Source of the DNA: Eukaryota sp. TZLM1-RC
Taxonomy: Eukaryota > Protista > Metamonada: BaSk clade
Direction: 5' to 3'
DNA length: 64,000 nucleotides
Assembly (NCBI GenBank): GCA_040285825.1
Contig: JAUPSS010000005.1
Location: forward strand, 1,240,001 to 1,304,000
Shown here: piece after piece, positions 3,007 to 51,184 of the stretch
Layout of the letters: the number at the start of each line of letters is the position of its first letter
How positions within the stretch are numbered: the stretch's first letter is position 1
The notes under the pieces: generated by a model
What the model saw: the letters and a program-made list of their open reading frames with translations, nothing else
What the model was told of the DNA's origin: nothing
Databases searched by the model: none
Program-made: the position numbers and the translations under genes

Positions 3007-3525
3007 TGCTTGCTATTATTGTCCTTGTCGTGTTTCTCCTAGTTGTTGCCATGATATTGATACAACTCTTTTCTTCAGTTGTTATGAAAAACTGCTGCAT
3101 TCAGTTTGGACGGCCACGAAAGAGTTTGGTATGATAATACTGACCTGCCTAAACCTTCTCACTCGGGTTTGGCATCGAATACCCTTCTGTGTCAGAATAA
3201 TAAGTTGTATGTTGGTAGCTGTTTCAGCACTCCCTTTGATGTCAACTGCCTTGATCATCGTCTTTTCCTACATCAACGTCATCATCCAGATTATCGTGCT
3301 GAAAAAACCTCAACAACTGACACTATCAATGGCGTATCTTGTACAATGTTGCAATACGAGCCCGAAAGTGGTGTACGACTCAATTGGTTTATTTCAGATG
3401 ACAGTTTTGTGATGAGGTTTCAACGCAGAGAACGCAGTTTCGGATTTTGGTCCACTGTTATCGAAGAAGACTACACTGATCACAAAAGATTGACTAGTTT
3501 TGATTTTAAGTCACAATTTTGTTAG
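3007..3525 (+). pseudogene. Frameshifted small secreted protein, possibly ependymin-related
   Basis: Signal-peptide-like MLAIIVLVVFLLVVA in one frame. A Cys-containing ERVWYD...FC body lies in another frame (ORF 3106-3525). The family guess is weak. Confidence 0.3.
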
Positions 3526-5449
3526 CTCGATTTGTCACATAAACATTAAGTTTCAACAATTTTGTCATATTCAAACCCATCAACAGAATCCAAAAGCAAT
3601 CCAGCTGAATTAAAAAATGCTTTTTGTCCATCTTTCCTGCAACACACATAATCCAAGTTTCTGCAACTTTTATAGTACATTTTAATTCATTGCACAATCA
3701 AAAGATTCAGCCGACGACATAGCAAAAGAAATTCAAAGTTCATAGGAAACCGTAAAATTCGATATTTACATGACATTTACATGACATTTGGAATTAAATA
3801 GCAAGCCCTCTGTTCAAAAGTCTAGATTTATTTGTGTTTCATGTACTACATTTGGAGCTGAATTCAATAAATAGTTCTATTCAGATCATCACGTGGCTGA
3901 ACTGCCTCATGAATAATCGGATTCATATAGACTCCATTGTGTTTCTGTCAAACAACCTAAGTATTTATTCACCATTACTGCCATTGTCTATCAACATAAT
4001 TCTTTTCATTCAGCGGTGCACTTATTTCATGAATTTGCAGTAAGCTAGAGTTATTTTTTTCAATTATATCTCGTTACTGATCAGAACTGAACCAGTTTTC
4101 TGGTAATTTGAAAATTTTGAGTTTGAAAAGCATGGCAAAAGTGGAAACAACCAAAAACGCCGTCAAAGATATGAGCACCGAATGAAGTAATCATAGATCT
4201 CAGTTTCACAATAAGTAAATATCATTCAGTTTTATTCAATATGTTTCTCATCCAGGTTTAGTTCAATTCAATTCAAATAAAATTTGAAAGAATGTCAAAC
4301 TCTTGATGTTCAAAAATTTATTACTATTGCACTGAGCATCAAGGACACACAAAGTTGAATTGGTCGAATTTGTGAAACATTCGATATCTATTCATTAAGG
4401 TGTAGTAGGTTCCATCCACCGATATGCAAAACAACAGACCTTTTCGTCCTATATAAAAGTTTCCCAAACCAGAGAGGGTGTGATGTGAGCAGAAATACAT
4501 TATATAAATAGTTTTTATTCCTAGTTTCAGTTTACCACGACAGTATGTATGACAGTTTTACTTTTAGTTTCAAACAAAAATTATATCCAAGACACTCATG
4601 AACTGACCATGTACTTCTGTTGTTATACTAATTGTAGACCATGGTAGTAAAATTATAGCACCTGGTTCTTGATCTACTATTGGAAATGGCCTACTTCTTC
4701 CAACAATATTGCAAGTCATGAGCATAACTTTAGTCACAGTATTCAGCATGCTTTACTATAGTAATTCTTTATCAGCGTTCAGCAATTCTGACTCAAACTC
4801 ATCTTCAACCGAAATAGTTGAGAATGTGACGCAGTGGTTTCTATTAATTTGATTTTATTAAATTCGAATTACTCATTGTGTTATTTAAAGCCAAAAGAAT
4901 TTGTATGACACCAGGCTACTCTATGAAAAGGTATTGCTATGAAAATACAGTATGACCCCTACATTTTCTACTATTCGACAGATGTAACAGTTGTTTATTG
5001 TTGTTATTGGAATAACTACAATATTAGAATAACTAAAAGAATTGCTTCACCTTAATTGTTATTGTTAAACATCATCCTTGAGAAATTATTGAAAAACCAA
5101 TGAAGTAAGAGCTCTTCAAACATCAGCATTCCTAAGATCCCAACCTGATACTTGAGTGCGAGGGTGAAGGGCGCGGAATTTAAATTTTTTGCCGTTTGAC
5201 ATTGGAATAACCATCACTAGTTTTACGATTTAAATTGTTTTTGTTACGCTTTTTTCTTGATACACAATCTATCGCCAAGGAAGAACTGTGGAAATTGGAT
5301 GCCTACTAACTGTTTTTAAAAAGGGGCCAAGGAGATTGTTGTCACAAAAAGATGAAGAAAAAAATAAAAATCAATAACTAAATTAATATTTAAATTTTTG
5401 TATATTTTAGCCTAATGTACTGAAACTGAGCATATCACTTCCTTCCTAT

Positions 5450-6200
5450 ATGAACTGGTTTTCAGGGAATATCGGTAATTTTTTTGAAAAACCATGCCCT
5501 GGCATCCTTCGTGTCTTAGGCATCGCTCATTTTGATGATAAGATCGACACTATCATGGAACATACCAATTCCTCCCTTCCAGGTCCTTCTCCTTTCTCAC
5601 GTGAAGTTCTCCACCTAGCCAAGCATCCATGCTCTGCAAAGATGTTACAAAAAAATCTCGTTGCTCGTGCAGAGAATCTTGTTGCTTGTGTTTGTCTTAA
5701 AGATAATCAGCATGTGAAAATGCTTGGCCTTATCAATAACTATATTATGATAAGTATGGAGTATGTGCATTTGCTCAAGCCTTTAAGACAAATTCAAAAT
5801 TGGAAGCACTTGGTTGTACCTCGAACAAATTCAACCATATTGGTTGTAAAGCAATAGCTGAGGCTTTGAAAGTTAATTTTGCGATAAAAGAGCTCAATTA
5901 TTTGATAGCCCAATTGGTGATGTTGGTATTCGATACCTTGCTAATGCGTTGCAATCAAATAGTTCATTGGTTGATCTTGACCTTCGTCGAAGTAAATGTA
6001 GTAATCAAAAGCTGCTGCTTTGAGTGAAGTTTTAGAGGTTAACAGTGGTATTGAAGTGCTTTGGTTACCCGATAATAATATTAGTTACCAAGGTGCTTTT
6101 GGCTCAAGTAATGTTGGCAAATTCAAAAGTTAAGTTGAAGCTTGTATTCGACCAAATAACTGAAAAAACAGGGAAAGCTTGGAAGAAGGTTTTGTGTTAG
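5450..6200 (+). pseudogene. Ribonuclease-inhibitor-type LRR protein, decayed
   Basis: NHIGCKAIAEALKVNFAIKELN-type repeats spread over several frames. Confidence 0.6.
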
Positions 6201-7079
6201 GATTAGTTTCTAATTGTAAATAAATCATTTTCTAGATATAATCAAATGACTTTTAATCTTGAATAAAAATCTTGTGGTATTTGAATAAAAAATACTTACT
6301 ACTGCCAACATTAAACAAATGACAAATGTGATAACCCTAAGTACGAATTAGCTACGCACTAACGGAACCGTTTTAAATATACGTATAATCAAAGTGTATC
6401 ACTTACAACATTGCCTTTTTCGACTGAATGAAAAGGAATTTATTGATTTTTTTTCAACTTTGGATTCAACAACGCATTAATCACCACAGTTAATGAAAAC
6501 TACAATTTCCTATCAATACCAGAGGTCGTTAGAGTTGCAGTCCTTTTTATTGCTAAGATGACCAATCCTCCTGTCAAAGAGTATGAAAGAGTTTGTTTAG
6601 AGTTTGGATAAGAATATTCTAGAAGTTTCCGAAAAGTGATTAAAAGGAGAGGTTTGTTTCTCCCTCCCTGGGTCAACCTACCGTTAACTCACTTTCTGTC
6701 ACGGATTCAAATTTCTTCTTTTCTTTGCCAAAGAGATGTCGCTAACCAACAGTGACTCTGATACGGACTAAAACGTCGCAGTAGAGATTCTACCCATCAG
6801 ATCTAGCTCATTTTTTTCACTTCCATCCCCCCCCTCAGTTATACTCGACATTTTTCTAAAAAAATGAATTCAAACAACGACCAATTTGCCGGAAAAACCA
6901 AAAAACTCGAACAATGCTCATCGTTGTTTGTCGTGTGATGAACAACTTGGTCACAAAATAATATAAACAAATGTGAAGACGGCAGTAAAACTGTTTCAAA
7001 TTCTGAGACTGCCACTATGTTCAAAAATATTTTTTATATTTCCAAAAATAATTTTAAATTAATAATCAATTCGCTGAAG

Positions 7080-9770
7080 GTACCATTAATTGATTATACC
7101 TCAACTAGTTTCTGATTACTTGGCTTTTAATAGGTTCTACTAAAATGACGTTTGATAGCCTTAAAAACTATTTGAATTCAATTAAGGAAGATCTTGAAGT
7201 TATTAAGACCCTTGAATTGGAGTTTTTTTATTTAAATATAATTTTATTCTAAACCTATAAATCAACATCTAAAAAATCCATCTCTCCCAAAACAAAAACA
7301 CTAGATGCAACTCTCTCATAGTGAGATCCAAGAGAAAGCAAAGCATCAGAAACCATCTTTAACATCCCCTTAAAAATAGAAAACACAATTCTATTTTGCC
7401 AAAAAAATCTGTTGAAATTTCTGCCAGTTCTTCTCCTTACAATCATTTCAAAATCATCCAAAAAACGTAAAGCAGTTGGTGCAAGTGAACCAAAAAGGGA
7501 AAATACAAATGGATACAAATTGTATTTTGCGTGCTGTAGACTGGCCAAAGATTAGATTAGATAGATTAGATAGATTGGACAAAGGTTCATTGTATTTTTT
7601 GAATTTAAAATTTTCAGCATTTGAAAGGGGATTATGAATTTCAGAATTAACAAGCCTTTCATTTGAGGCATTACAAGGATCAATAGACATTACATTCCAA
7701 TAAAATGAAACTTCCATCTAATCCAGGTAATATAACATCACCTCTATTATTCTTATGAAAATCATCTTCAGCATCAAACAGATTTGACAACAGAGGTTCC
7801 AAGAAGAATTCAATTCTATGAGATTTACACATACAATATAACTACTCTCTTACAGCATCATGAACCTTGCTTCTAAAAGTAATAAAATGTTTACAATTTA
7901 ACAGATGAGTAGTTGTAATTTCTCGAGAACATTTACAAATAAAATTATGAGGTAAATTATCAGGCCAGATAGAGGAACGAAATCTCATATTAAAATTCCA
8001 AGCAGAATCGGTTAAGAGAGTACCATAAACTTGGGGAATTGTTGTTGCTAAGGCGGAAGAAGTACTGTCACACATATCTTGTAAAAGATTTGCAAAAGCG
8101 GGATTCTATTTCTTGGCCAAGCCAAGTCTAACATCAAAATCCAAGCTTTCAAAAATCTTTGACAATTTTTGTTGAAGCTTTTTACAGCAAAACTGTAAAT
8201 TAAAAAGAGATCGGTTTGGAATTTCTTGAATTGATTGAGGAAAACATTTGGTCCAAATTTGTGGCGGCAATTTTTCAAGTTCACAAGATAACTCATACAA
8301 ATAAGGACTGCAATTGGGAACTAACAGATGAGAATCATCAGGAAATCTACGAGAAAATTCTTAAATAAAATTTTTGCCACCGCCCAAGAATGCTGATTGA
8401 CACAAAATTGAAGATTTAGTAAATCCAATACCCCCCAAATTTGCTGAAGAAAATAAGTGACTTTTCAACATTCCTGGTTCTACATCCAATAAATCAGCAA
8501 AAAATTCTGTTACCAATGAATTAAATGAGCGACAAAAATCTAATGCTGTGGAAGGAGCACAAGATCTCAAAATGTGGGTTATTCTCCCAGTGTAGCAAAT
8601 TTTAAGCATGATAAATTTAATATGCTTTTCTATATCTAAAGAAGAAATTGAATCGAGTTCAATTTTCATTTGTTCTAAAATAATTTGCAATTCATTATGA
8701 ATTTGAGGCACATTTCCTAACCAACAACCAAGGAACTTAAAAGCATCACTACTATAATTCGTAAAAGGGACAATAGAATGGTTTATCACGAGGTCTTGAG
8801 CAGAAGAGCCAATCAGAAGACATTTGCTGGCATTAAGATGAAGCCCAATATTTTCATATGAATCGGCGATTTCTTGAGCAACCAATTCTAGTAAATCAAA
8901 TGAACCAATCAAGGATATATCATCCATATAAGCAACTATTTTTATGGAAGGGTATTTTTGCTTAATGATATTTAAAGTTTTGTGAATAGCTAAACAAAAC
9001 AATAATGGACCTAAAGGATCACCTTGCTTCAAACCAGAAGATGATTTAAGATCAAATGAATTAAAAATTAAATCTGATTCTTTCCCATAAAAATGGTAAA
9101 AAAAACTCGATAGCTCAGGAAAATCAGATTTAATAACTTCAAAAATTGCTTCTCGCTTTACAGAATTGAAAGCATTTTTAAAGTCGAGATTAAAAATAAA
9201 ATTATTTTCCTCTGCATTAAAAAAGGTATCAGAGGCAATAGCAGCAACAGAAGCACCATCAATTGTTTTGATTCCAAATTGATGAGGATTTAAAAATGTA
9301 GAAGCTTTGTCTTTGACACGATCAAAGACAATTGATGCCAGCAAACGAGAAAGAGATTCACCAACAGCAATTGGGCGTATTCCATTAGGTTTGATTCCGT
9401 TTCCAGGCTTTACTAAAGCAATCAGACGTGCTGCGAGTAATTCAAATGGAGGATTCATTTTCAAAACAATTGAATTGGAGTAGCATCTTAAATTTGTTCT
9501 TTTGAAAACATATTATGCTAAAAAATACCCATTTAGTTCGATCGTTACCTCCATCAGTAACTTCCAATTTTTGTAGACAATTCAAAAAAATTACGTGTAG
9601 AATTTTTGGCTTTTTTAATGTATGTTGATCCAACAATTTTGAAGAATCAATTTTTTTATGATGTTCAACTTGGCGGTGTTGGTATTAATTCTTCAACGCA
9701 ATTGACAAAATCATTGATTGGTGGTGGGAAAAATTTTGTTTTTGAATTTTCTAGACAATATCATTTTGCC
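7080..9770 (+). mobile_element. Older decayed CRE-type RT copy (7080-7223 and 9482-9770), split by a younger element
   Basis: Removing 7224-9481 joins ...DLEVIKTLELE to xHLKFVLLK..., matching LDIEKHIKFIMLK of the other copies. LIGGGKNFVFEF follows at about 9715-9750. Confidence 0.7.
7224..9469 (-). mobile_element. 5'-truncated CRE/R2-type non-LTR retrotransposon
   Basis: RT ORF 8361-9464 (IRPIAVGES, KQGDPLGP, YMDD) followed by knuckle and RLE fragments. A-tail at about 7224-7250. 12-bp TSD TTGAATTGGAGT at 7212-7223 and 9470-9481. Confidence 0.93.
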
Positions 9771-38278: not shown

Positions 38279-39361
38279 TAAACAAACTTATCTCAATTAT
38301 GTTACTGTTCATGTCTCATTTTACAGCATCAATACAATTTCAACAGCAACTGTGTAAATTTGGGCATGTGATTCCAAAGCCGTTTTGGTTGCATAAAACG
38401 CCAAAAATTGATGCTACTGAAGCACAACCATTTTTGCTTCCACCTAACAACTGCTTCATTCGTTATTGCAGAAATATGATGCTTGAATTGATCCGTCTTT
38501 CGAAATTGTGTTCAAGCTTTGATAAGATCTTTAAGCCAATCGTTAATCTCAGGATCATCAGTTACTACTGGAAGAATGCTCACCGCTTTTTAAGGGAGTT
38601 TCAGTAGCAGGTGGATATTATTTTTATAGTAATTTCTACGCATTCGTAGCAAGAACACTATCTTATAAAGTAGATTCCACAAAATTTTATTGAATCATAG
38701 AGCAAATTTAAATCGTATGTCTTATTTTGAAAAGAATCATGTGAGCAAAAACCAGAAAAAAGAGATACACTATTTTCACTTCCCAATTTCAGTTTTTCTA
38801 ACTCCCCATTTAACGTTCAACCAATGTTCTTTTTTTTCATGCAGTTATACATAGTGTTTTATGTTGCTTGAGTTTTCTTATTTATTTTACTTATTTGATT
38901 AAAACTAATGGTGATTCGTTGGTTTTTGACAAGTTTTGCTCAAATAGTTCCACAGAAGAATATGCTCCCTTCCCATGTACCTGATTTCTTGCACAAACGG
39001 CATCCTTCGACAAGTGCACTTCTTTAGAATTTATGCTGACGTGATAACGAATTTATCTAGATCGTTGTTTATTATATAGTTCATTTTCTTAACTGTTTTC
39101 ATAAACGATCTGCATTAATTGTTTACAAGGAACTGTGTACGAAACCCAATCCCTGCAATTGCCGGATTCGGAAAATCTTTATAAGCAGCTTAAACAACTA
39201 GAACAATATAGTTCGTAGAGGCAAGCTTCGAGCTACAAGCAGCCAGGGTTACAATCAATGCGCTGACAGTGATCGACCCTTTAATGAATTTGGAGGCAGG
39301 GAAACCGAGAAGTATTCAAAATGAACACACCTCTGAATTGAACTTTTGGTGCGATACCACA

Positions 39362-41029
39362 ATGCATATCACCCTCCCTTCTGACCAAGATGGGCTCTTT
39401 ACAGAACAGTCTGACTCTTCTCTATTCACAGTTCAACAAAGTACCTCCTTTTCTTACTTCTCTAATCTCAAATTCGACTCATCTACTCCTAATTTACTTT
39501 TCCTCTTCTCCGATAATGATCCTGCTAACCTCAAAACTCCCCATGTTCTTCAATCCTTTCTATCCACTCACGAGTCTTCCTTCAACATATCACTCCTCTC
39601 CGTCACTTCCTCAACCATTCATGATCCTTTCCAGCCACTGTCGTCACACACCATCACCTACGACCCACATGCTTGCTTCGATATCAACCCTAAACCCTCA
39701 AAGTTCACACATACTAGGGACTCTTGCGAAGATTTTCTTGAAGGTTTTACTGAATTACTTGAAAATACTATCAGAACTACTGTTTTTCAGTGTTTAATTT
39801 CTTTAATTACATTCAATAATTCAAAGTTGTTTATTTTTGAATTCCCAATTATTAATCTATTTTACAATTTGGATAATGAGGATGAGTTTGAATTGCTCAA
39901 GTCTTTTTTAGTTTTATTTAAAGAAATGGAATCTGCTGAACATTTGAAAAATTCTGTATCTAGTAACAACTTTTTCAAATTTTTGGTACTTGTGCTCAAG
40001 TCGAGATCACGTGCGTCTACAGTGATCCATTCTTTTCCTTCCCAAAGATTTAGCGAAATTTTGCTTTTGTTTAAGGAAATTTCTACTTTTCCTTTGGATT
40101 TTGACGAAGATTATCACCAATTAATGAGAAAAAACAATTTTTTATTTGCAATTAGTCCAGAAATCTTTCAAAATTCATATAATTCAACAGTGAAGAAATT
40201 AAATTTTGTTCTTAATTATTCTCTTTTAATTAAAGAAAACATTGATCTTAGAAAACAATTAAGAAACATGAATTCACAAGCAGATAAAATTGATTTCAGT
40301 TCAATTAATCAATCAAATTTGATTGAATCAACACGTGTACGGTCAATGTCGACGTCACTTGGAGTGCAGACCAAGCAGGAAAGTGACAAGCCGAATATTT
40401 TAAACTTGGATGAGGTTGACACCGAAGTGAGCCCTTCACCTTGTAAAGAGCATGAAATTTTAGAAAAAGAAAATTTAACTCTCAAAACATTAGTTATTAA
40501 GCAAAAGGAAGCATATCAAGAAGAATTGGAGAAAATGGAAAGAATGTTGGAAGAAACCAGAAAAGCTGCTCAAAGTAATCACGTGCGAGTTGAAAATGAT
40601 GACATCATAGGTCAAAATAATGACGTGATAGCCGACAAAGTTGATGTCGCAACTGAGCCACAAGAGCCAGTCACCATGGAAGCTCAAAAACAAATGATTC
40701 ATCAAGAAGTCTCTGTAATTCCTGCCTTGGTTTCCGTTTCAATGATTACTGATTCATTGGATTTTAAACTGAAAGGAACCAATACCATTCCTTCCTTAGC
40801 CGCAAATGCTGCCGTTCAAACGACCAAAGTCAAAGGAAATCTTCATAATAACTCAATGGTAAAGTCAACACCTTTGGAGAAGAAGTTTGTAAATAATGAT
40901 TACAGTATGTTGAGCAAAGAAGAGCTTTTGGTTAAGTTGACTATTGCTGAACAACAGTTGTTAACTTTGGAACAAGCTTTTCAGCATGAATTGGAAAGAT
41001 ATGAGATGATGTTGGCTAATGAAGATTAG
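39362..41029 (+). CDS. Hypothetical coiled-coil protein
   Basis: Long uninterrupted ORF with heptad-rich C-terminal segments; start codon uncertain. Confidence 0.75.
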   Translation: MHITLPSDQDGLFTEQSDSSLFTVQQSTSFSYFSNLKFDSSTPNLLFLFSDNDPANLKTPHVLQSFLSTHESSFNISLLSVTSSTIHDPFQPLSSHTITYDPHACFDINPKPSKFTHTRDSCEDFLEGFTELLENTIRTTVFQCLISLITFNNSKLFIFEFPIINLFYNLDNEDEFELLKSFLVLFKEMESAEHLKNSVSSNNFFKFLVLVLKSRSRASTVIHSFPSQRFSEILLLFKEISTFPLDFDEDYHQLMRKNNFLFAISPEIFQNSYNSTVKKLNFVLNYSLLIKENIDLRKQLRNMNSQADKIDFSSINQSNLIESTRVRSMSTSLGVQTKQESDKPNILNLDEVDTEVSPSPCKEHEILEKENLTLKTLVIKQKEAYQEELEKMERMLEETRKAAQSNHVRVENDDIIGQNNDVIADKVDVATEPQEPVTMEAQKQMIHQEVSVIPALVSVSMITDSLDFKLKGTNTIPSLAANAAVQTTKVKGNLHNNSMVKSTPLEKKFVNNDYSMLSKEELLVKLTIAEQQLLTLEQAFQHELERYEMMLANED

Positions 41030-41690: not shown

Positions 41691-44600
41691 TTATTCAACA
41701 ACTAATGTAAATGACTCGTCGACAACATTATTATTGTTCCGGTTTTGTACTTCTGCATTTCCTATATTATTGACGTCGAAAACAGGTATCTTTTCCTGTG
41801 TAGCAAATCTTGAATCCAGCATTGTGACAACATTGGTCTTCCTAGAAATCAATTTTGATGGCAACGTGTGATGACTTTCAATTACAGCTAGGATGGACAA
41901 AAATTTGTCCCTATTTTCTTTGGAATAACAACATTCAAGAAGTTTCAAAATTTTAGAAAAAATTTCAACAGCATCATCAAAGGATGATCCTGTCATATAT
42001 TGTTTTTTAATCATGCCAAGACCAAAATCATTCAAAACTTGGTTGTCATTATTTAAACAATCCAATGGTGATTTGTTGTATCTGAAAGCAGTCAAGACCG
42101 TCACAACTTGGGACATATTAGGTCTATCAATGTACCTAAATTTCAAACATTGCTGCAATAAAGGTAATAAAGAGTTTGGAATTGATGGGTGGTAAGGAAC
42201 ATCAGGGATATCGCCAGATCGAAGAGACTGTATAATCAACTGATCTCTATTGGGAGATCCTTCGAAATCTTGCCAAAGGGATTCCTCAGTAAATACATAG
42301 ATAACAATAAGAGCAAATGAAAAAACATCAATGGTGTCAGTATAAACAGTTTCATCAGCTACAAGCTCTGGACTTGCCCATGTTGGGGTTAAAATCCTAT
42401 TAGAATTGAGGGAAAGTGACATGTTTGAGTTTCCAATATTTTTACCACTACCCCAATCAATAATGACAGGACATCCACCTCTAAATAGAATGTTATCAGG
42501 CTTGAGATCACGATGCAAAAATTTCGATTCGTGACAAGCAGTTAGTGCATTAGCAATACTGATCAATAAATTAAGCTTCTCTGTTTCCTTTTTAATAGTA
42601 CCAATCTTGTCTTTTAAGGTCATATTTGACAATCTTTCCATCACCAAACCAAATCTGTCCTTACCATTCTTTGTGATAGCAACAAGACCATATACCCTAG
42701 GAAGAGAAGGCACATTTGGCAATGATTTTAATATTGAATACTCCCTTGATAATTCAGGACTGATTGTACCAGAACCATAATAAAGTTTCACCACAACATC
42801 GCTCATTTCATACTCAGCAAAAACAACCTCAGATTGACCACTATATGTGCTGGTTTCCCAAAGAATTTCCAGCTCACAACTTTGAATATTTGGTTCAAGT
42901 TCTTCGGTAGCTTGACTATCTAAAATTTGCTTTTGTAAAGCTTTTCTTTCTTCAGCATGTTGCATTTGTTGTTCTTCTAATGCAACTTTGACAGAATTTT
43001 CTGTAGATGAAGCTATTTGTTTTTGTAACTCGGAAAGTTCTATTCTTAACTGTCTTAGCAGCTCCCTGTTGTGTGAAGCTAGAGCTTCTTGGAAATCTTC
43101 TTGATCATAATCAACAATGGCGTCCATTTTTTGAGAGGAGAGAGGTGGTAATTTTCCATAAGTTTTTCCGACAAAACCTTTCAATAATTCTGATGAGAAG
43201 TCTTCCAGTAGCTTGTTACACATTTCAAACTCCCTTTTGAATTTGTCCCGTACAAAGGCCTTTTTAAACCATTTGGAATCATCATGTTGTTTTAATATTG
43301 AATTAACTTTACAACAAACATCCACAAAATTATCTAAAACCTCAGTAATGACTGGTGACTCAGTCAATTCTGGATGAGCTTCAATTGGGGTAAAAGTAAG
43401 TTTGGTTACTCTTAAAACTCTACCTCCGAGTACTGCAGCTTGGGTCTTATTGATCTTTACTTTCTTTATTGTTGAAAAGAGAGCTCCCAAAGCTGAACCG
43501 GCTGGACCAAATAAACTTGATTGACTGCTGAGTAAAGTTACTGTTGAAATGACTGGAGTAGTGACTGTATCAATGAACTGTTGAGGTTGCCATTCAGCAA
43601 GGTCTTCTTTTATGTTAGAAATGGTTTTACAAAGAGAAAAAATGAGAGATCGGGAAATTGAAATTACGTTGTCACCAATTGAAAGTTCGTGAGTGCTATT
43701 ATTAAGTTCGACTGGTTGTGAAGCACAATAATTACTGGAATTGTTACCTACATCTTGGTTCGATGAATTTCCATCAGAATCAGCAAAACAAGACTTTACA
43801 GAAAGTAAAATACCAGAAAAAGAGTCAATAGTTACTTTCTTCATTTTCAACAACCACCAAACAAATACAATAACAGCAAAAACAACAAACATTATGACCA
43901 AAACTATGAAAAAAGTAACATTAACTGACTCTGGTTCAGTTGTGGGCGAACTTGAAGGTGACAAAGTGGCTGTTATAAAGAAATGTTCATTTCCAGTATA
44001 AACATTGATGACATCATAATTAGAAGCATTGGTGGTGCGAGAAGCCGTTTCATCTCCACTTTCCCAACTAAATAAAACATTATTGAAATCCAAAGCAAAA
44101 ACAGTAGACCCTCCACCAACAATACTTCTAATCCTAGTCAAGCCTTCAACTTTACCAGGGGTATGTCGGGGTACTATGTCGGTGGATCTTCCTAGAAGTC
44201 TACCACAACTATAAACATCACCTTCTTCTGTAAAGAAAATCGTGTAAGAAGAACCACAACTTGCTTGGGTGACTCTGTACAACGAGATATCAACTACTGA
44301 TTGAGGGGTATTTCTATGGTTGGTATCTCCAAGGCATAGAGATCCATACCTATTGGAACCACTGACCATTAATTCATTTTGTGCAGTAATAAATAAAGAA
44401 TGACTAGGACAACCTAACACTTTCTTCACTTGGGTAGCGGTTGAAACATCATCGGGTAAAAACTGAATATAATTGAAACCTTGGGTAGTGTCGTCCTTAC
44501 CATTACCCAGTTGACCTATATTACCTTTACCCCAAGCCTTAACACTTCCATCAGACAATACTGCAAGTGAATGGTCACCTCCAGCAGATACAACAATAGC

Positions 44601-45470
44601 CTCGGACAATGATTCGATTCTTTTGGGCAGAGGTTGGTCACTTGTATCACCATGACCTAATTGTCCACTTTCCCCTTTTCCCCAAGACCAAACAGTATCA
44701 TCATCAAGTCTCGCTAGACTATGGTAAGCACCAGTGGTAATCTGAACCACGTTGGATAATGAACTTACTTGAGTGGGGAAATGTTTGACCTTATTGTGAC
44801 CCAAACCTAATTGACCAAAAGAATTACAACCCCAAGTAAAAAGGGTACCTTCACTAGTGATACCCACAGTATGAGACTCACCTCCATCAATAGAAGCAAA
44901 AACTTCATCAGTATTAACTGTTAATAAACCATGGGTAACACCAGCATGACCTGTAGTGAGTAACTCACACCAAGCGAGTAATTGGTCGTAAGTGTCAACA
45001 AACACATCAGTACGTTCAATTAAAACGATTGAGTTTGTTAAAAACAATTCTGTTTCAAGATGGTCAAATTCTGGAATTTCCAAATTCACATTGACCAATT
45101 CAGTGTTTCCTTCAACATCAAAACCAGTAACTGCAAGATTAACTTGACCATCAGTGAGAGATTTAATAAAACAATCTTTACATGTAAGGTTTCCTGATAT
45201 CTCTACATTTTCTACGTCAACGAGTAAGGTAACATTGGATAAGTGGAGGGAGTGCAAAAGAGGTGATGTATCAAGCACGAGGATCGGACTTCTTTTGCCA
45301 CCGTCTACAATGACGATGGAATCACTGGTAGGAGGGAAGGGATCCCAAATGGAGGCATTAGACCAAAGTATCGTTTTGCCATATGTTAGGGGAGTCACAA
45401 GATAAACTTCCTGGGAAAATGAGACAGTGAGCAGTATCAACAGAAAGAACCACATCATCGGATGACCCAT
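41691..45470 (-). CDS. Single-pass receptor kinase: signal peptide, RCC1 repeats, TM, MLKL-like helical bundle, coiled coil, protein kinase
   Basis: Signal MMWFFLLILLTVSFS; repeats such as WGCNSFGQLGLG and GAYHSL; TM FFIVLVIMFVVFAVIVFVWWLL; kinase VVVK, HRDLKPDN, DWG, WASPE and DVFSF. Confidence 0.9.
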   Translation of the reverse strand: MGHPMMWFFLLILLTVSFSQEVYLVTPLTYGKTILWSNASIWDPFPPTSDSIVIVDGGKRSPILVLDTSPLLHSLHLSNVTLLVDVENVEISGNLTCKDCFIKSLTDGQVNLAVTGFDVEGNTELVNVNLEIPEFDHLETELFLTNSIVLIERTDVFVDTYDQLLAWCELLTTGHAGVTHGLLTVNTDEVFASIDGGESHTVGITSEGTLFTWGCNSFGQLGLGHNKVKHFPTQVSSLSNVVQITTGAYHSLARLDDDTVWSWGKGESGQLGHGDTSDQPLPKRIESLSEAIVVSAGGDHSLAVLSDGSVKAWGKGNIGQLGNGKDDTTQGFNYIQFLPDDVSTATQVKKVLGCPSHSLFITAQNELMVSGSNRYGSLCLGDTNHRNTPQSVVDISLYRVTQASCGSSYTIFFTEEGDVYSCGRLLGRSTDIVPRHTPGKVEGLTRIRSIVGGGSTVFALDFNNVLFSWESGDETASRTTNASNYDVINVYTGNEHFFITATLSPSSSPTTEPESVNVTFFIVLVIMFVVFAVIVFVWWLLKMKKVTIDSFSGILLSVKSCFADSDGNSSNQDVGNNSSNYCASQPVELNNSTHELSIGDNVISISRSLIFSLCKTISNIKEDLAEWQPQQFIDTVTTPVISTVTLLSSQSSLFGPAGSALGALFSTIKKVKINKTQAAVLGGRVLRVTKLTFTPIEAHPELTESPVITEVLDNFVDVCCKVNSILKQHDDSKWFKKAFVRDKFKREFEMCNKLLEDFSSELLKGFVGKTYGKLPPLSSQKMDAIVDYDQEDFQEALASHNRELLRQLRIELSELQKQIASSTENSVKVALEEQQMQHAEERKALQKQILDSQATEELEPNIQSCELEILWETSTYSGQSEVVFAEYEMSDVVVKLYYGSGTISPELSREYSILKSLPNVPSLPRVYGLVAITKNGKDRFGLVMERLSNMTLKDKIGTIKKETEKLNLLISIANALTACHESKFLHRDLKPDNILFRGGCPVIIDWGSGKNIGNSNMSLSLNSNRILTPTWASPELVADETVYTDTIDVFSFALIVIYVFTEESLWQDFEGSPNRDQLIIQSLRSGDIPDVPYHPSIPNSLLPLLQQCLKFRYIDRPNMSQVVTVLTAFRYNKSPLDCLNNDNQVLNDFGLGMIKKQYMTGSSFDDAVEIFSKILKLLECCYSKENRDKFLSILAVIESHHTLPSKLISRKTNVVTMLDSRFATQEKIPVFDVNNIGNAEVQNRNNNNVVDESFTLVVE

Positions 45471-46039
45471 ATTGGTTGGAGGTAACAGTCCAATGGGTGT
45501 GTCACTGATGTGACAATACAAAGATGATTTGGAAAATTTTTGATTTAATCTAGATGAGCAACAGTGAAGAAAAGTTGAAATCATTTTATTGAAGGTCTAG
45601 ACAAGTAATCATCAATCAAATTCTAGGTTCTCTAGTTGAGGCTGTTGTGACATTTTCTGGAAGTGTCAGCATAATTGAAGAGGAAAAGACTTAAAGAATT
45701 TTCTATTGTATAAAATTGGTAAAATTGAATTTTGTTTTCAATTAATGAGGGAAGGATGGAGTTGATTCTTGATTCACGATCTTCTTTTGGTGGATTTTAA
45801 CAAACTTTGGTTTGTATATTGGAGAGGTAGGTTTTGATAATGTGAAGTTTTGGTCGTCTATTTGACCTTTGTAGTTTGATTTTTAGTTTAACCAAATTTT
45901 TATCAGAAAACAACGAACACGATGATCTCTTTAAAGAACAATATACCTCCCACAGTCAACATTGTTGAAATAATTCTGAACAACATGCTTCCAGACAGCC
46001 AGCTCAACATTGTTTAATCGATATGACATTAAGTTAAAT

Positions 46040-47425
46040 TAATTTTATTTTTATTTATTTATTAAATAATTATATATTATAAAGAATCAAATAAAAACAA
46101 AACAAACTAAAACACATAAGAAACTAAATTCTCCACGCCAACTCTTGATGAATCCTTATAAAGTTTAGACATCATTAAACTCAAGTATTTGGGAACACTT
46201 CTGTACAAAGCAAAAATGACACGATTTTTCCATAAATTCTCTGCAAAATTCTTACCACTTGAACGACATAAATTACCAAAATCATTGATGAAATTCATGG
46301 CGGATTGTCCAATGTTGCCAAAAATCGAAAAGGCAAAAGGAACAAACGAAAACTTCGAATAAAGGTTCTTATTTAAATCATTTAATATCTCAGTATATTT
46401 ATCTCTCTTACGATCTTCAGCCTTGTTTAAATGACCATTAGTACTAAGTAAAACATCATCACGATAAACAAAAGCAAAGGGATCAACTGTAGTGAAATCA
46501 ACAACAACTTGAGACGAATCCACAAAAGGAGCAATTAAATCACCTCGACGTGAATTAAAAAGATTATTATCACTATAATGCTTCAACAAAGGTTCTACTT
46601 TGCAACTAAAATTGTAACACTTGAACATCTCATATGTCACATCACGAACGGCATTATGAAGAACTGACCTATATTGGAGAAATTTCTTGCAGCTCACAAT
46701 ATGACGAAAATTGGCAGTAGGTTTTTTGTTACAAATACAATAAGAATTGTCCAAAAGACCACTTGGATACATCCCCAATCTCAACCGCATGTTTTGTTTC
46801 GAAGCTTCATTTGTTAAGTGAAGACCAAATGGCCTTGGTTGCTGAGATATTAAATTAGTACAGTTCTGAATGTCTGATAAAAAGGCAGCAAAGACGGGAT
46901 TATTAATCTTAGTCACACTAAGTCGTTTAGAAAAATCCAGGTCTTCAAAACCAATAAAAACAGACTTCTGTAATTTCACAACAGCAAGATGAAGGTTGGT
47001 GAAAGATCTCGAAGGCACAGCAGGCAAACGTGAAGGAAAACTCCTATTCCAAATATCAACAGGTAGTTCTTGCACCATTTTTTCAAGAGAAATTAATGAA
47101 GGATGTGATTCATTTAAAGGAATATGATCAAAACGAAGTTTCCATTCAAAAAGAAAATTTTTCATACCACCAATAAAAGCACTTTTGCATAAATACTCTG
47201 CTTTTGAAAAACCAACTCCACCAAATTTAGGACTAAAATATGCATGATAAAAAATTTTAGATGGACAAACTTCTACTAAATTTCCTAAGAAATTTGTTCT
47301 TAAAGTATTGAATTGACGTGCAAAATCATGAGAAATTGTGGGAGATAAAGAACGAAGAAGATGATTAATTTTTGATCCAAAACACACATTTAGAACCGAA
47401 AACGCTAAATGTTTGTCAATTTCTT
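46040..47425 (-). mobile_element. 3' half of a further CRE-type non-LTR family
   Basis: 426-aa ORF with FGGVGF, CICNK..HIVSC..H, RRGDL..VDFT..AEDRKRDKY; AT-rich tail. Confidence 0.9.
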
Positions 47426-48844: not shown

Positions 48845-51184
48845 TTGGGCTTAAGCCTTAACCTCAAGTCATTATCCTTAAGCCAAAATAAATCATTCAA
48901 TTTCAATTGTCAACAGTCTACATCCCTTGTACTCTCAGATATCACTCAATCATACACCTATCCTCCCCTTCAACACTTCCACAATTCTCTTACAATGTTT
49001 TCGCAACATCGACGCCTAACCCACATGTCCGAACCTTCGTGTGATCAAGAAGAAACACCTACACTGTGTAACCCTTGGCTAGGTCAAGATTATGTTGGGT
49101 ATCTGTCGAAAGCATCCCCTACAAATGAAGTTCTGATCAATCGGGAGGTTGGGATCAAGTCTATTTCCAGCAGTTATGGTCACATTCTTCTCCTTACCTA
49201 TTCTCATGAGGTTTATGGCTGGGGATGTAATGATAGGTGCCAAGTTTTGTATCAAGGACCCAAGACCATTAAATTACCAATCAAATTACCCTTTTGTGAT
49301 ATTGTTTCTATTTCAGCTGGCCGTAGTCACTCCCTTGCCTTATCTGCTGAAGGTAGGCTATATGGTTGGGGCTGTAATGAATTTAGCCAAATTAATAAAG
49401 ACAATTCTTTGATCCTTCCAATAACAAATCTGAAGTTTCCACATAATATTCAAAGTGAATTAGGCGTGGAAAATTTTCGAAAAGTTTTTACACATTCAGA
49501 TTTCTCTTTTGCCATCACTAGTGAAGGTCAAGTACTCTATTGGGGTCATTACAGAGAAGCTCAAATAATTAAACCTTTGAAAAATGTTGTTTCATTCTAC
49601 TCTTGTAGTAATAGTGTTTTAGTATTAACTGAATGTCACCAAATTTTCATGATTGTGATCAAATTTTCAGGTCCTGAGGTAAGTAGAGTTGATTTTACTG
49701 TTTTAAACCATTGTGAGAACATTTTCAAACAATCAATCATTTTTGATGGGAGTTCTGTCATTTCTCCTGATAATCATGGTTACTTACGAAAATCTCAAAT
49801 TATTTTTAACAAAAGACCATATCTGACGTCATCAATTAAGATGCAAGGTTTATCTAACATTAAATCTGCTTTTGGTGGCTTTAACATACAAGCTGCTATT
49901 GGTTATGATAATAAAGTCTTTGTGTGGGGTAATTTGAACACAATAAGTAATCTCTATGGTGAAGGAACTTTTCCAGTATGTGTAGAAGCTTTGACCGATA
50001 TAGAAGGCATTTCAGTAGGTCATGAATTCCTTTTTGCCTACAACAAAAACACTGTTTTGGCTTGGGGAAGGAACGATAAAGGTCAATTAGGTACAGGTGA
50101 TTTGATTGATCGACCACAACCTGTCAAAGTATTTGGTTCCGAATTACTTGGGACTTTTCAGCATTCAAAACAACCTTTAGATAGAATGTTTAGTGGTCTG
50201 ATCAAATTGGTTTTCTCTAATTACATTAATTTTTTAAATGAAATTCTTGACCATCACCCATATGCTAAGGCCAGATTTATTTGCAAATCCTTTATAAGTA
50301 AGAGATTGTCCCAACTTGCTTCTGAAGTATCGGAATCTACTATTTCACGCAAAATTTTAACTGATCCCATAGCAAATGAATTGAGCTATTCTGTTTCAAA
50401 GATGTCACTTTATCTACAACACGATGAGACAACAATCAATTTCTCAAACAATGCAGTTACTGATCTCAATTTCAAATGTTTTGATTTATTAAGGCATTTT
50501 GAAGTGTTAAGTTCAGTTCCTGATATAGAATCATTATCAATCACTGGTTTCAGTGGTAGCTCAATGGTGTACAATCATTTGAGATTAACACATTTGGTTA
50601 ATTTAAAGGTTTTGGAGCTTGATTACCATGTTAATAGTTTGCCTTTACTACCCACTTCCTTAGTGAAGCTCGTCTTGAAACAAGAAATACCCAGTATTTG
50701 TGATTTGGGGTATTTGAATTCATTGCAAATTTTGGAAGTTTATGATCATTACCTATCAAGTGGCATGTTAAGTGGACAAATTAAATTACCAAAGTCATTA
50801 ATATATTTGAAATCAATATCCTCAAACGCTAGTTCTATTAGCATTACTTTACCTTACCTTAAGGAGTTAGTTTTTCTAAGTGATGTGCCAAGAGAAATCT
50901 GTCAAACGAATTTTCCAAATGTAAGAATTGTCAAAATATTTGAATTTAATCGGTTCCATTCATCAAATTCTATCTTAAGTTCTCAATTATGTCCTGACAT
51001 ACTCAAACAAAGTGGAAAAATTAAATCTATAACACTTGTGAACCCTGTTACAATTTTGATTAATTTGAACTGTTTTCCATGGTGGATTCAGTTTCCTAGT
51101 AAATATTTTCCTGAAGACTGCTTAGATCAGGAAAGCACAGTTGAAGAACCTGATTGTTGTTCTTTTTTTGACTTGTTGTCTTAG
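48845..51184 (+). CDS. RCC1-repeat protein with LRR-like C-terminus
   Basis: YGWGCND, AGRSHSL, AWGRNDKGQLGTG; LVNLKVLELD..LPTSLVKL. The true start is probably an ATG near 48995-49025. Confidence 0.85.
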   Translation: MGLSLNLKSLSLSQNKSFNFNCQQSTSLVLSDITQSYTYPPLQHFHNSLTMFSQHRRLTHMSEPSCDQEETPTLCNPWLGQDYVGYLSKASPTNEVLINREVGIKSISSSYGHILLLTYSHEVYGWGCNDRCQVLYQGPKTIKLPIKLPFCDIVSISAGRSHSLALSAEGRLYGWGCNEFSQINKDNSLILPITNLKFPHNIQSELGVENFRKVFTHSDFSFAITSEGQVLYWGHYREAQIIKPLKNVVSFYSCSNSVLVLTECHQIFMIVIKFSGPEVSRVDFTVLNHCENIFKQSIIFDGSSVISPDNHGYLRKSQIIFNKRPYLTSSIKMQGLSNIKSAFGGFNIQAAIGYDNKVFVWGNLNTISNLYGEGTFPVCVEALTDIEGISVGHEFLFAYNKNTVLAWGRNDKGQLGTGDLIDRPQPVKVFGSELLGTFQHSKQPLDRMFSGLIKLVFSNYINFLNEILDHHPYAKARFICKSFISKRLSQLASEVSESTISRKILTDPIANELSYSVSKMSLYLQHDETTINFSNNAVTDLNFKCFDLLRHFEVLSSVPDIESLSITGFSGSSMVYNHLRLTHLVNLKVLELDYHVNSLPLLPTSLVKLVLKQEIPSICDLGYLNSLQILEVYDHYLSSGMLSGQIKLPKSLIYLKSISSNASSISITLPYLKELVFLSDVPREICQTNFPNVRIVKIFEFNRFHSSNSILSSQLCPDILKQSGKIKSITLVNPVTILINLNCFPWWIQFPSKYFPEDCLDQESTVEEPDCCSFFDLLS

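Follow-up and report, generated by a model that had tools for sequence, protein, structure and literature searches.

Skoliomonas litria TZLM1-RC is a free-living anaerobic flagellate from a soda lake and belongs to a metamonad clade sister to Fornicata (PMC11316075). Within a stretch of 64,000 nucleotides of its genome (hereafter the window; assembly GCA_040285825.1, record JAUPSS010000005.1), a real, intact, single-exon gene at ~1.28 Mb of the record encodes P0001, a receptor-like protein in which an RCC1-repeat ectodomain is joined through one membrane helix to a four-helix bundle of the MLKL_N type, a two-helix brace and a protein kinase. We are highly confident of this architecture and of the homology to MLKL_N. 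The explanation that we favour overall, and hold with moderate confidence, is a one-chain receptor with an outer propeller, an inner MLKL-type bundle, a brace and a competent kinase, brought together by gene fusion.

Work on MLKL-type death domains has dealt with animals, plants and fungi, in which separate proteins usually carry out sensing, activation and execution. P0001 places an MLKL cassette in a metamonad flagellate, with an apparently active kinase, and joins it directly to a cell-surface ectodomain. MLKL-type kinase fusions themselves are known; what is new here is such a fusion wired as a single-pass receptor, within a new lineage-specific family. A survey of MLKL evolution lists non-animal homologs only in plants and fungi (PMC11476962), and the main text of the Skoliomonas genome paper makes no mention of kinases (PMC11316075). 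Full-text searches of a limited literature library returned neither a membrane-anchored MLKL-like receptor nor any MLKL-type protein in metamonads, which fits the opinion of the first-pass annotation of this region, made from the sequence alone, that the architecture was undescribed.

Homology of the helical domain to MLKL

Residue numbers of P0001 follow its open reading frame (ORF) of 1297 codons, and the coordinates of its parts are collected in Table 1. The Pfam family MLKL_N (PF22215) matches aa 702-801 (nt 43182-43481) at E 4.8e-5, with 23.3 bits when the whole protein is searched and 26.1 bits for the isolated piece. The curated gathering cut-off of this family is 27 bits, and it is exceeded by the relatives P0145 (31.4), P0144 (29.1) and P0008 (29.0 bits); nine of the ten family members match MLKL_N at E up to 1, the best of them at 5.7e-10. 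A profile was built from the bundle and brace of these ten proteins, namely the receptor and nine relatives found by word search. Searched against solved structures, it placed MLKL in the seven best positions (E 5e-6 to 6e-5), the next match following at 0.005, and its alignment is collinear over MLKL residues 15-200, through bundle and brace. Since mouse MLKL residues 150-461 align in turn with aa 862-1167 of the receptor, the two sequence alignments together make the whole MLKL chain collinear with aa 695-1167.

The same profile, run against 1.84 billion representative proteins, gave 16 matches at E up to 1e-10, and all those looked up were from Skoliomonas. The first matches beyond Skoliomonas are canonical MLKL_N-kinase proteins scoring 60-75 bits on MLKL_N, for example a bdelloid rotifer protein (E 1.6e-9, 75 bits).

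An AlphaFold2 model of aa 633-903 (pLDDT 86.6, pTM 0.79) was compared by exhaustive structural alignment with 48,161 solved chains, and a Foldseek-seeded run agreed with the outcome. This comparison, which the first-pass annotation had proposed, ranked the N-terminal domain of human MLKL first (Z 12.4, root-mean-square deviation 3.0 Å, 144/152 residues, 18% identity), mouse MLKL second (Z 10.8) and plant AtMLKL3 sixth (Z 9.4). Ranks three to five were taken by bacterial CAMP-factor toxins, which are pore-forming (PDB 5h6i, 9kx0; Z ~10, 5-6% identity, model residues 33-175), a likeness of the model that is probably generic helical-bundle resemblance. On the isolated segment, HeLo, HeLo-like, RPW8 and MCAfunc gave no Pfam match at E up to 10, and only MLKL_N and a chance-level Pex24p appeared. 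An earlier designation of the bundle as MLKL/MCAfunc-type is thus upheld for MLKL_N and finds no Pfam match for MCAfunc; the suggested HeLo likeness likewise finds none. In the Atlas, a language-model search of the bundle returned clusters of MLKL_N, MCAfunc and RPW8 with scores of 0.81-0.88, which fall short of 0.9 and are a lead only; the corresponding shape search gave weak rows with TM-scores <0.5, two of the ten being plant MLKL_N/MCAfunc clusters.

Beyond the brace, the kinase domain retains Lys933, Glu948, HRDLKPDN (1024-1031), DWG (1043-1045), SPE (1071-1073), Asp1086 and Arg1154, and its catalytic residues are invariant across the ten aligned family members. The activation loop is predicted to be flexible and carries invariant Ser and Thr residues. 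From these residues the kinase is predicted to be active, unlike the MLKL pseudokinase. Its fold is closest to RAF-family kinases (TKL group) and tyrosine kinases (Z ~26 in the structure search), and its profile points to no clear family, with PknB, LRRK2, ZAK, MLKL and JAK2 all at similar E-values of 1e-18 to 1e-15; when the whole intracellular model was used as the query, the list was filled by kinase-only matches. Sequence profile, predicted fold and catalytic residues therefore support the earlier description of an MLKL-like bundle followed by a coiled coil and an active-looking kinase in one ORF behind an RCC1 ectodomain.

Several observations weigh against reading P0001 as an MLKL-type receptor. 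Its own MLKL_N score (23.3-26.1 bits) lies just under the 27-bit cut-off, a Z of 12.4, like other values below ~13, is attainable by unrelated helical bundles, and Foldseek against the PDB finds MLKL at weak E-values of 0.27-1.4, though with a probability of 0.93-0.98. The Gly-rich loop of the kinase, SGQSEVV (915-921), keeps one of its three glycines; the kinase looks active unlike that of MLKL, so the switch logic may differ; and the fusion is known from genome sequence alone, in one genome, its closest homologs in the Skoliomonas strain GEM-RC1 being unfused.

The structural points among these would suit a helical domain that is merely an analogous four-helix bundle, sharing no ancestry with MLKL: helical bundles recur, the Z of the best match is borderline when CAMP-factor toxins reach ~10, the Foldseek E-values exceed 0.1, and the Atlas shape matches stay under a TM-score of 0.5. 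Such an origin appears very improbable, because the sequence profile alone puts MLKL in the top seven places with the next match 100-fold weaker in E-value, MLKL_N matches nine of the ten members and several of them above its cut-off, the first outside relatives score 60-75 bits on it, and the match is collinear through bundle, brace and kinase. The MLKL assignment is made because sequence evidence and fold match stand together; the fold match alone would be insufficient.

Chimeric origin and the kinase family

Hydropathy and the positive-inside rule give P0001 the layout of a single-pass receptor kinase: a signal peptide is followed by an ectodomain, a lone membrane helix and a kinase on the cytoplasmic side. 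From the signal peptide, the helix and the positive-inside rule together we infer a type I membrane protein whose propeller is extracellular and whose bundle and kinase are intracellular, a topology shared by the surface protein P0028, which has a related ectodomain and a short tail. The best solved structure for the RCC1 repeats is UVR8 (E 6e-68). The module preceding them (aa 59-223) matches no Pfam family, and its neighbours in the Atlas are at chance level. The signal peptide, RCC1 repeats, membrane helix, helical segment and kinase motifs listed by the first-pass annotation are all present, at or within ~20 nt of where it had placed them.

The deposited model of the gene is a single exon of 1254 aa that starts at Met44 (45453-45455), and the start given earlier, 45470, corresponds to Met39 (45468-45470); translation likely begins at one of these two residues. 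Before Met39 another 38 codons are open in the same frame (window 45471-45584, minus strand), the first of them a further ATG. Because homologous surface proteins begin at the signal peptide, this segment is read as probably a 5' leader rather than coding sequence.

By sequence comparison the receptor is chimeric: one part comes from a Skoliomonas family of RCC1 surface proteins, the other from a Skoliomonas family of MLKL-like kinases. The ectodomain half (nt 45461-43956) is 64% identical to P0028, whose gene lies ~650 kb away on the same contig. P0028 is by its layout a plain surface protein, built of a signal peptide, the same N-terminal module, RCC1 repeats, a further extracellular region that no Pfam family matches, a membrane helix and a short tail. 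For the kinase half (nt 43655-41766), identity is 56-58% with P0002 and P0003 and reaches 62% with P0145. A maximum-likelihood tree of the cytoplasmic part groups P0001 with P0145 of strain GEM-RC1 as sisters (support 96/95); it leaves deeper branches unresolved, and its outgroups have long branches.

The P0145 locus in GEM-RC1 carries, directly upstream and on the same strand, an RCC1 surface-protein-like coding sequence that is adjacent to the kinase gene and unfused. This upstream sequence (JAUFOQ010000013.1, stretch positions 3400-8020) consists of two units, with a signal peptide at the start, and shows frame changes at ~4314 and ~7450 that may reflect introns, indel errors of Nanopore sequencing or decay; in the deposited models it is divided into genes of 489 aa and 795 aa. 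Its last RCC1 open frame ends 18 nt inside the P0145 kinase ORF in a different frame, stops precede the kinase ATG, and no membrane helix was found in the matching frame before the kinase gene. By sequence, this arrangement argues that an RCC1 surface-protein gene fused with the MLKL-like kinase gene downstream of it, although fission in GEM-RC1 may be the alternative to fusion in S. litria. A mis-assembly of two genes, which the first-pass annotation had named as the condition that would undo its proposal, is judged unlikely because both gene types are adjacent, in the same order and orientation, in the sister species. Elsewhere, the GEM-RC1 homolog P0002 has no hidden ectodomain upstream (its ATG is closely preceded by a stop, and 5.4 kb hold no ORF of ≥100 aa), no RCC1 surface gene is seen at the P0003 locus, and the P0005 locus has only a distant RCC1 gene on the opposite strand.

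These loci also bear on whether the chimera is non-functional, whether an artefact of assembly or the product of a recent accidental fusion, unexpressed or decaying. Such a reading could draw on a gene known from genome sequence, with an architecture found in one genome, in an assembly built from Nanopore reads (PMC11316075), and on the frame changes in the syntenic RCC1 genes of GEM-RC1. It is nevertheless improbable. In DNA as AT-rich as this region a stop should occur roughly once per 15 codons, so that the chance of staying open is ~9e-4 for the 100-codon linker and ~4e-40 for the entire ORF of 1297 codons. Within the linker, stalk, membrane helix and positive-inside motif are well formed and follow one another in the correct order, catalytic and family-invariant residues are all intact, the two halves have diverged by 36-44% from their nearest relatives without gaining stops, and the gene order of GEM-RC1 independently supports the adjacency. 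We consider it likely that the receptor is expressed as one protein.

The cytoplasmic half is not a one-off, as the first-pass annotation had treated the gene, but belongs to a Skoliomonas family of at least 16 representative proteins. The nine word-search relatives all come from three Skoliomonas genomes and are 35-58% identical to the receptor over the whole cytoplasmic part; across the Skoliomonas and Barthelona members (P0002-P0010, P0144-P0149, P0165), identity is 35-62% over bundle, brace, kinase and tail, with the same invariant residues. This cassette is constant and the attached modules vary: P0003 has C-terminal RCC1 repeats, P0006, P0007, P0146 and P0149 carry leucine-rich repeats (LRR), P0004 and P0008 a B-box with or without membrane segments, P0005 a membrane helix followed by a large C-terminal region, P0002 a multi-pass C-terminal region, P0009 a tail anchor, and P0010 an N-terminal Ras-like GTPase with C-terminal Sel1 repeats. 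P0144 (P9112_000245; 466 aa), an Hsp70 fragment followed by the bundle, and P0148 (GEMRC1_002364), with bundle, B-box and LRR, are without a kinase and may be truncated models or kinase-free variants of the cassette. The more distant P0165 of Barthelona sp. PCE (PCE1_001345; 1736 aa) combines N-terminal WD40 repeats with a C-terminal MLKL-like bundle (aa 1269-1454) and kinase. Because it carries both, the cassette is older than the split between Skoliomonas and Barthelona.

The other members begin with the bundle or with a soluble N-terminal module (GTPase, Hsp70 fragment or WD40) and place their variable modules and membrane segments after the kinase, whereas only in P0001 is the bundle preceded by a signal peptide, an ectodomain and a membrane helix. 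A membrane helix in that position was found in the receptor only, among the ten aligned members and the other 47 matches of the large search. As to swapping of ectodomains among paralogs, a check that the first-pass annotation had suggested, the family carries many different fused modules, and an ectodomain with a membrane helix before the bundle occurs only here. The family is lineage-specific and undescribed, with shuffled sensor modules.

Possible mode of action and comparison with known systems

The first helix of the bundle (aa 693-708; 43461-43508, minus strand) bears a family-conserved small-residue motif, with Gly, Ala and Ser three to four residues apart, followed by a Lys/Arg cluster. 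The basic cluster, in the turn between helices 1 and 2, aligns with that of MLKL; helix 1 of human MLKL, within the aligned part, is without the small-residue motif. By sequence, this motif resembles glycine-zipper membrane-insertion motifs. Both elements fit a membrane-acting role and are no proof of one. By analogy with MLKL, such an effector role of the bundle is put forward tentatively.

In the mechanism that we propose, a ligand bound to the propeller would cluster receptors, and the kinases would then trans-phosphorylate one another's activation loops at the invariant Ser/Thr residues. Phosphorylation would loosen the hold of brace and kinase on the bundle, which the extra helices at aa 635-688 may help to restrain. 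The bundle, tethered ~60-110 residues from the membrane, could then engage the inner leaflet and either disturb or permeabilise the membrane or assemble a signalling oligomer. One chain would in this way combine roles that in animals are split among a receptor, RIPK3 and MLKL. The first-pass annotation had suggested that the protein may be a one-component sensor-executioner or a channel-forming immune receptor.

The same domains could instead belong to a conventional receptor Ser/Thr kinase in which bundle and brace form a juxtamembrane module for autoinhibition, dimerisation or lipid docking and the output is substrate phosphorylation, with no death or membrane damage. This is the principal competing explanation and a possible one, although we rate it below the fusion receptor with an MLKL-type switch. 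In contrast to the MLKL pseudokinase, every catalytic residue is kept; plants have a recognised class of receptor kinases whose ectodomains are RCC1-type (PMC9603095); a free-living bacterivore needs ordinary surface sensing; and the Ras-like GTPase, Sel1, LRR and B-box modules of the family would also suit general signalling scaffolds. Against this, the MLKL-type N-terminal domain is linked to cell death where tested, in animal and plant MLKLs, reviewed alongside wheat Pm13 (PMC10951266); the order of bundle, brace and kinase is conserved as a unit across the family, as expected of a switch-and-effector unit; and the basic cluster after helix 1 aligns with that of MLKL. Even on this conservative reading there remain a clear gene fusion, with neighbours in one species forming a single ORF in another, and an undescribed kinase family with shuffled sensors.

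Animal MLKL (PDB 6ux8, 4btf, 6lk5) and the receptor share a four-helix bundle, a two-helix brace and a kinase fold in the same order. In contrast to the receptor, animal MLKL is a cytosolic pseudokinase switched on by a separate kinase, RIPK3; P0001 adds a signal peptide, an ectodomain, a membrane helix, two extra N-terminal helices, a longer brace, a C-terminal helical domain and the full catalytic set. Plant proteins of the Pm13 type, which fuse an MLKL N-terminal domain to a kinase, and the AtMLKLs (PDB 6ka4) likewise have bundle, brace and kinase in one chain, and the wheat resistance protein Pm13 keeps all key catalytic residues (PMC10951266), as P0001 does by sequence. The plant MLKL-type proteins differ in being soluble, without ectodomain or membrane helix, and in having kinases of plant receptor-kinase lineages; no specific sequence affinity of the receptor to them was found in the searches made.

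CRINKLY4/ACR4 is an example of the plant RCC1-type propeller receptor kinases. P0001 resembles the class of RCC1 receptor-like kinases (PMC9603095) in layout, with its signal peptide, RCC1-like propeller, single membrane helix and cytoplasmic Ser/Thr kinase, whereas the plant proteins have no MLKL-like bundle or brace between membrane and kinase. Fungal HeLo and HeLo-like systems (HET-S, NLR-associated; PMC10951266) also couple a membrane-targeting helical death domain to variable sensors, a functional resemblance taken from the literature, but they employ NLR or amyloid signalling rather than a fused kinase.

At a wider scale, the MLKL-like kinases of Skoliomonas might constitute a repertoire for self-defence or regulated necrosis, in which an executioner cassette of bundle, brace and self-activating kinase is plugged into LRR, RCC1, B-box, WD40 and GTPase sensors. 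The receptor would condense this into one chain, so that binding of an extracellular ligand led directly to MLKL-type damage of the plasma membrane. We regard this idea as speculative and rather unlikely. If true, MLKL-style cell death, with a shortcut from receptor to executioner, would extend to a free-living metamonad on a deep branch. Should the bundle prove to be a membrane effector, P0001 would offer a minimal, genetically simple system for the release of the MLKL bundle and its attack on membranes, as well as evidence of regulated necrosis-like responses in free-living unicellular eukaryotes.

Sequence features and neighbouring genes

Table 1. Parts of the receptor gene in the window, listed from the N-terminus to the C-terminus
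Feature	Position	Strand	Residues (aa)	Remarks
Receptor ORF (protein P0001)	41691-45584	minus		uninterrupted, 1297 codons + stop
Signal peptide (inferred)	45411-45470	minus	39-58	hydrophobic core 44-58; aligns with signal peptides of surface-protein paralogs P0028, P0032
N-terminal ectodomain module	44916-45410	minus	59-223	common to Skoliomonas surface proteins P0028, P0032, P0131
RCC1-repeat beta-propeller	43965-44915	minus	224 to ~540	Pfam RCC1 E 1e-49, RCC1-like domain E 9e-60
Ser/Pro/Thr-rich stalk	43926-43964	minus	541-553	
Single membrane helix	43848-43919	minus	556-579	mean Kyte-Doolittle 3.35; followed by KMKK (580-583)
Low-complexity juxtamembrane linker	43683-43847	minus	580-634	holds the junction of the two parental gene families
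Two family-specific helices before the bundle	43521-43682	minus	635-688	conserved in paralogs
MLKL_N-type four-helix bundle	43176-43520	minus	689-803	
Two long brace helices (modelled)	42906-43136	minus	817-893	predicted helices 817-859 and 863-893; collinear with MLKL brace
Protein kinase domain	42069-42872	minus	905-1172	all catalytic residues
Conserved helical C-terminal domain	41790-42068	minus	1173-1265	in 10/10 aligned paralogs
Poorly conserved tail, predicted disordered	41694-41789	minus	1266-1297	

The ORFs flanking the receptor gene, at 39269-41029 (plus strand, 586 aa) and 46107-47387 (minus strand, 426 aa), match no Pfam family at E 0.001. On the opposite strand, at a distance of 3.3 kb from the receptor gene, is a second RCC1-repeat gene (window 48845-51184, plus), with an ORF of 779 aa (729 aa in the deposited model); its LRR part finds no Pfam confirmation at E 0.001, and its identity to the RCC1 surface-protein paralogs is just 20-29%. 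The annotation of this contig includes reverse-transcriptase genes a few kb from the receptor gene, and the region is therefore called rich in mobile elements.

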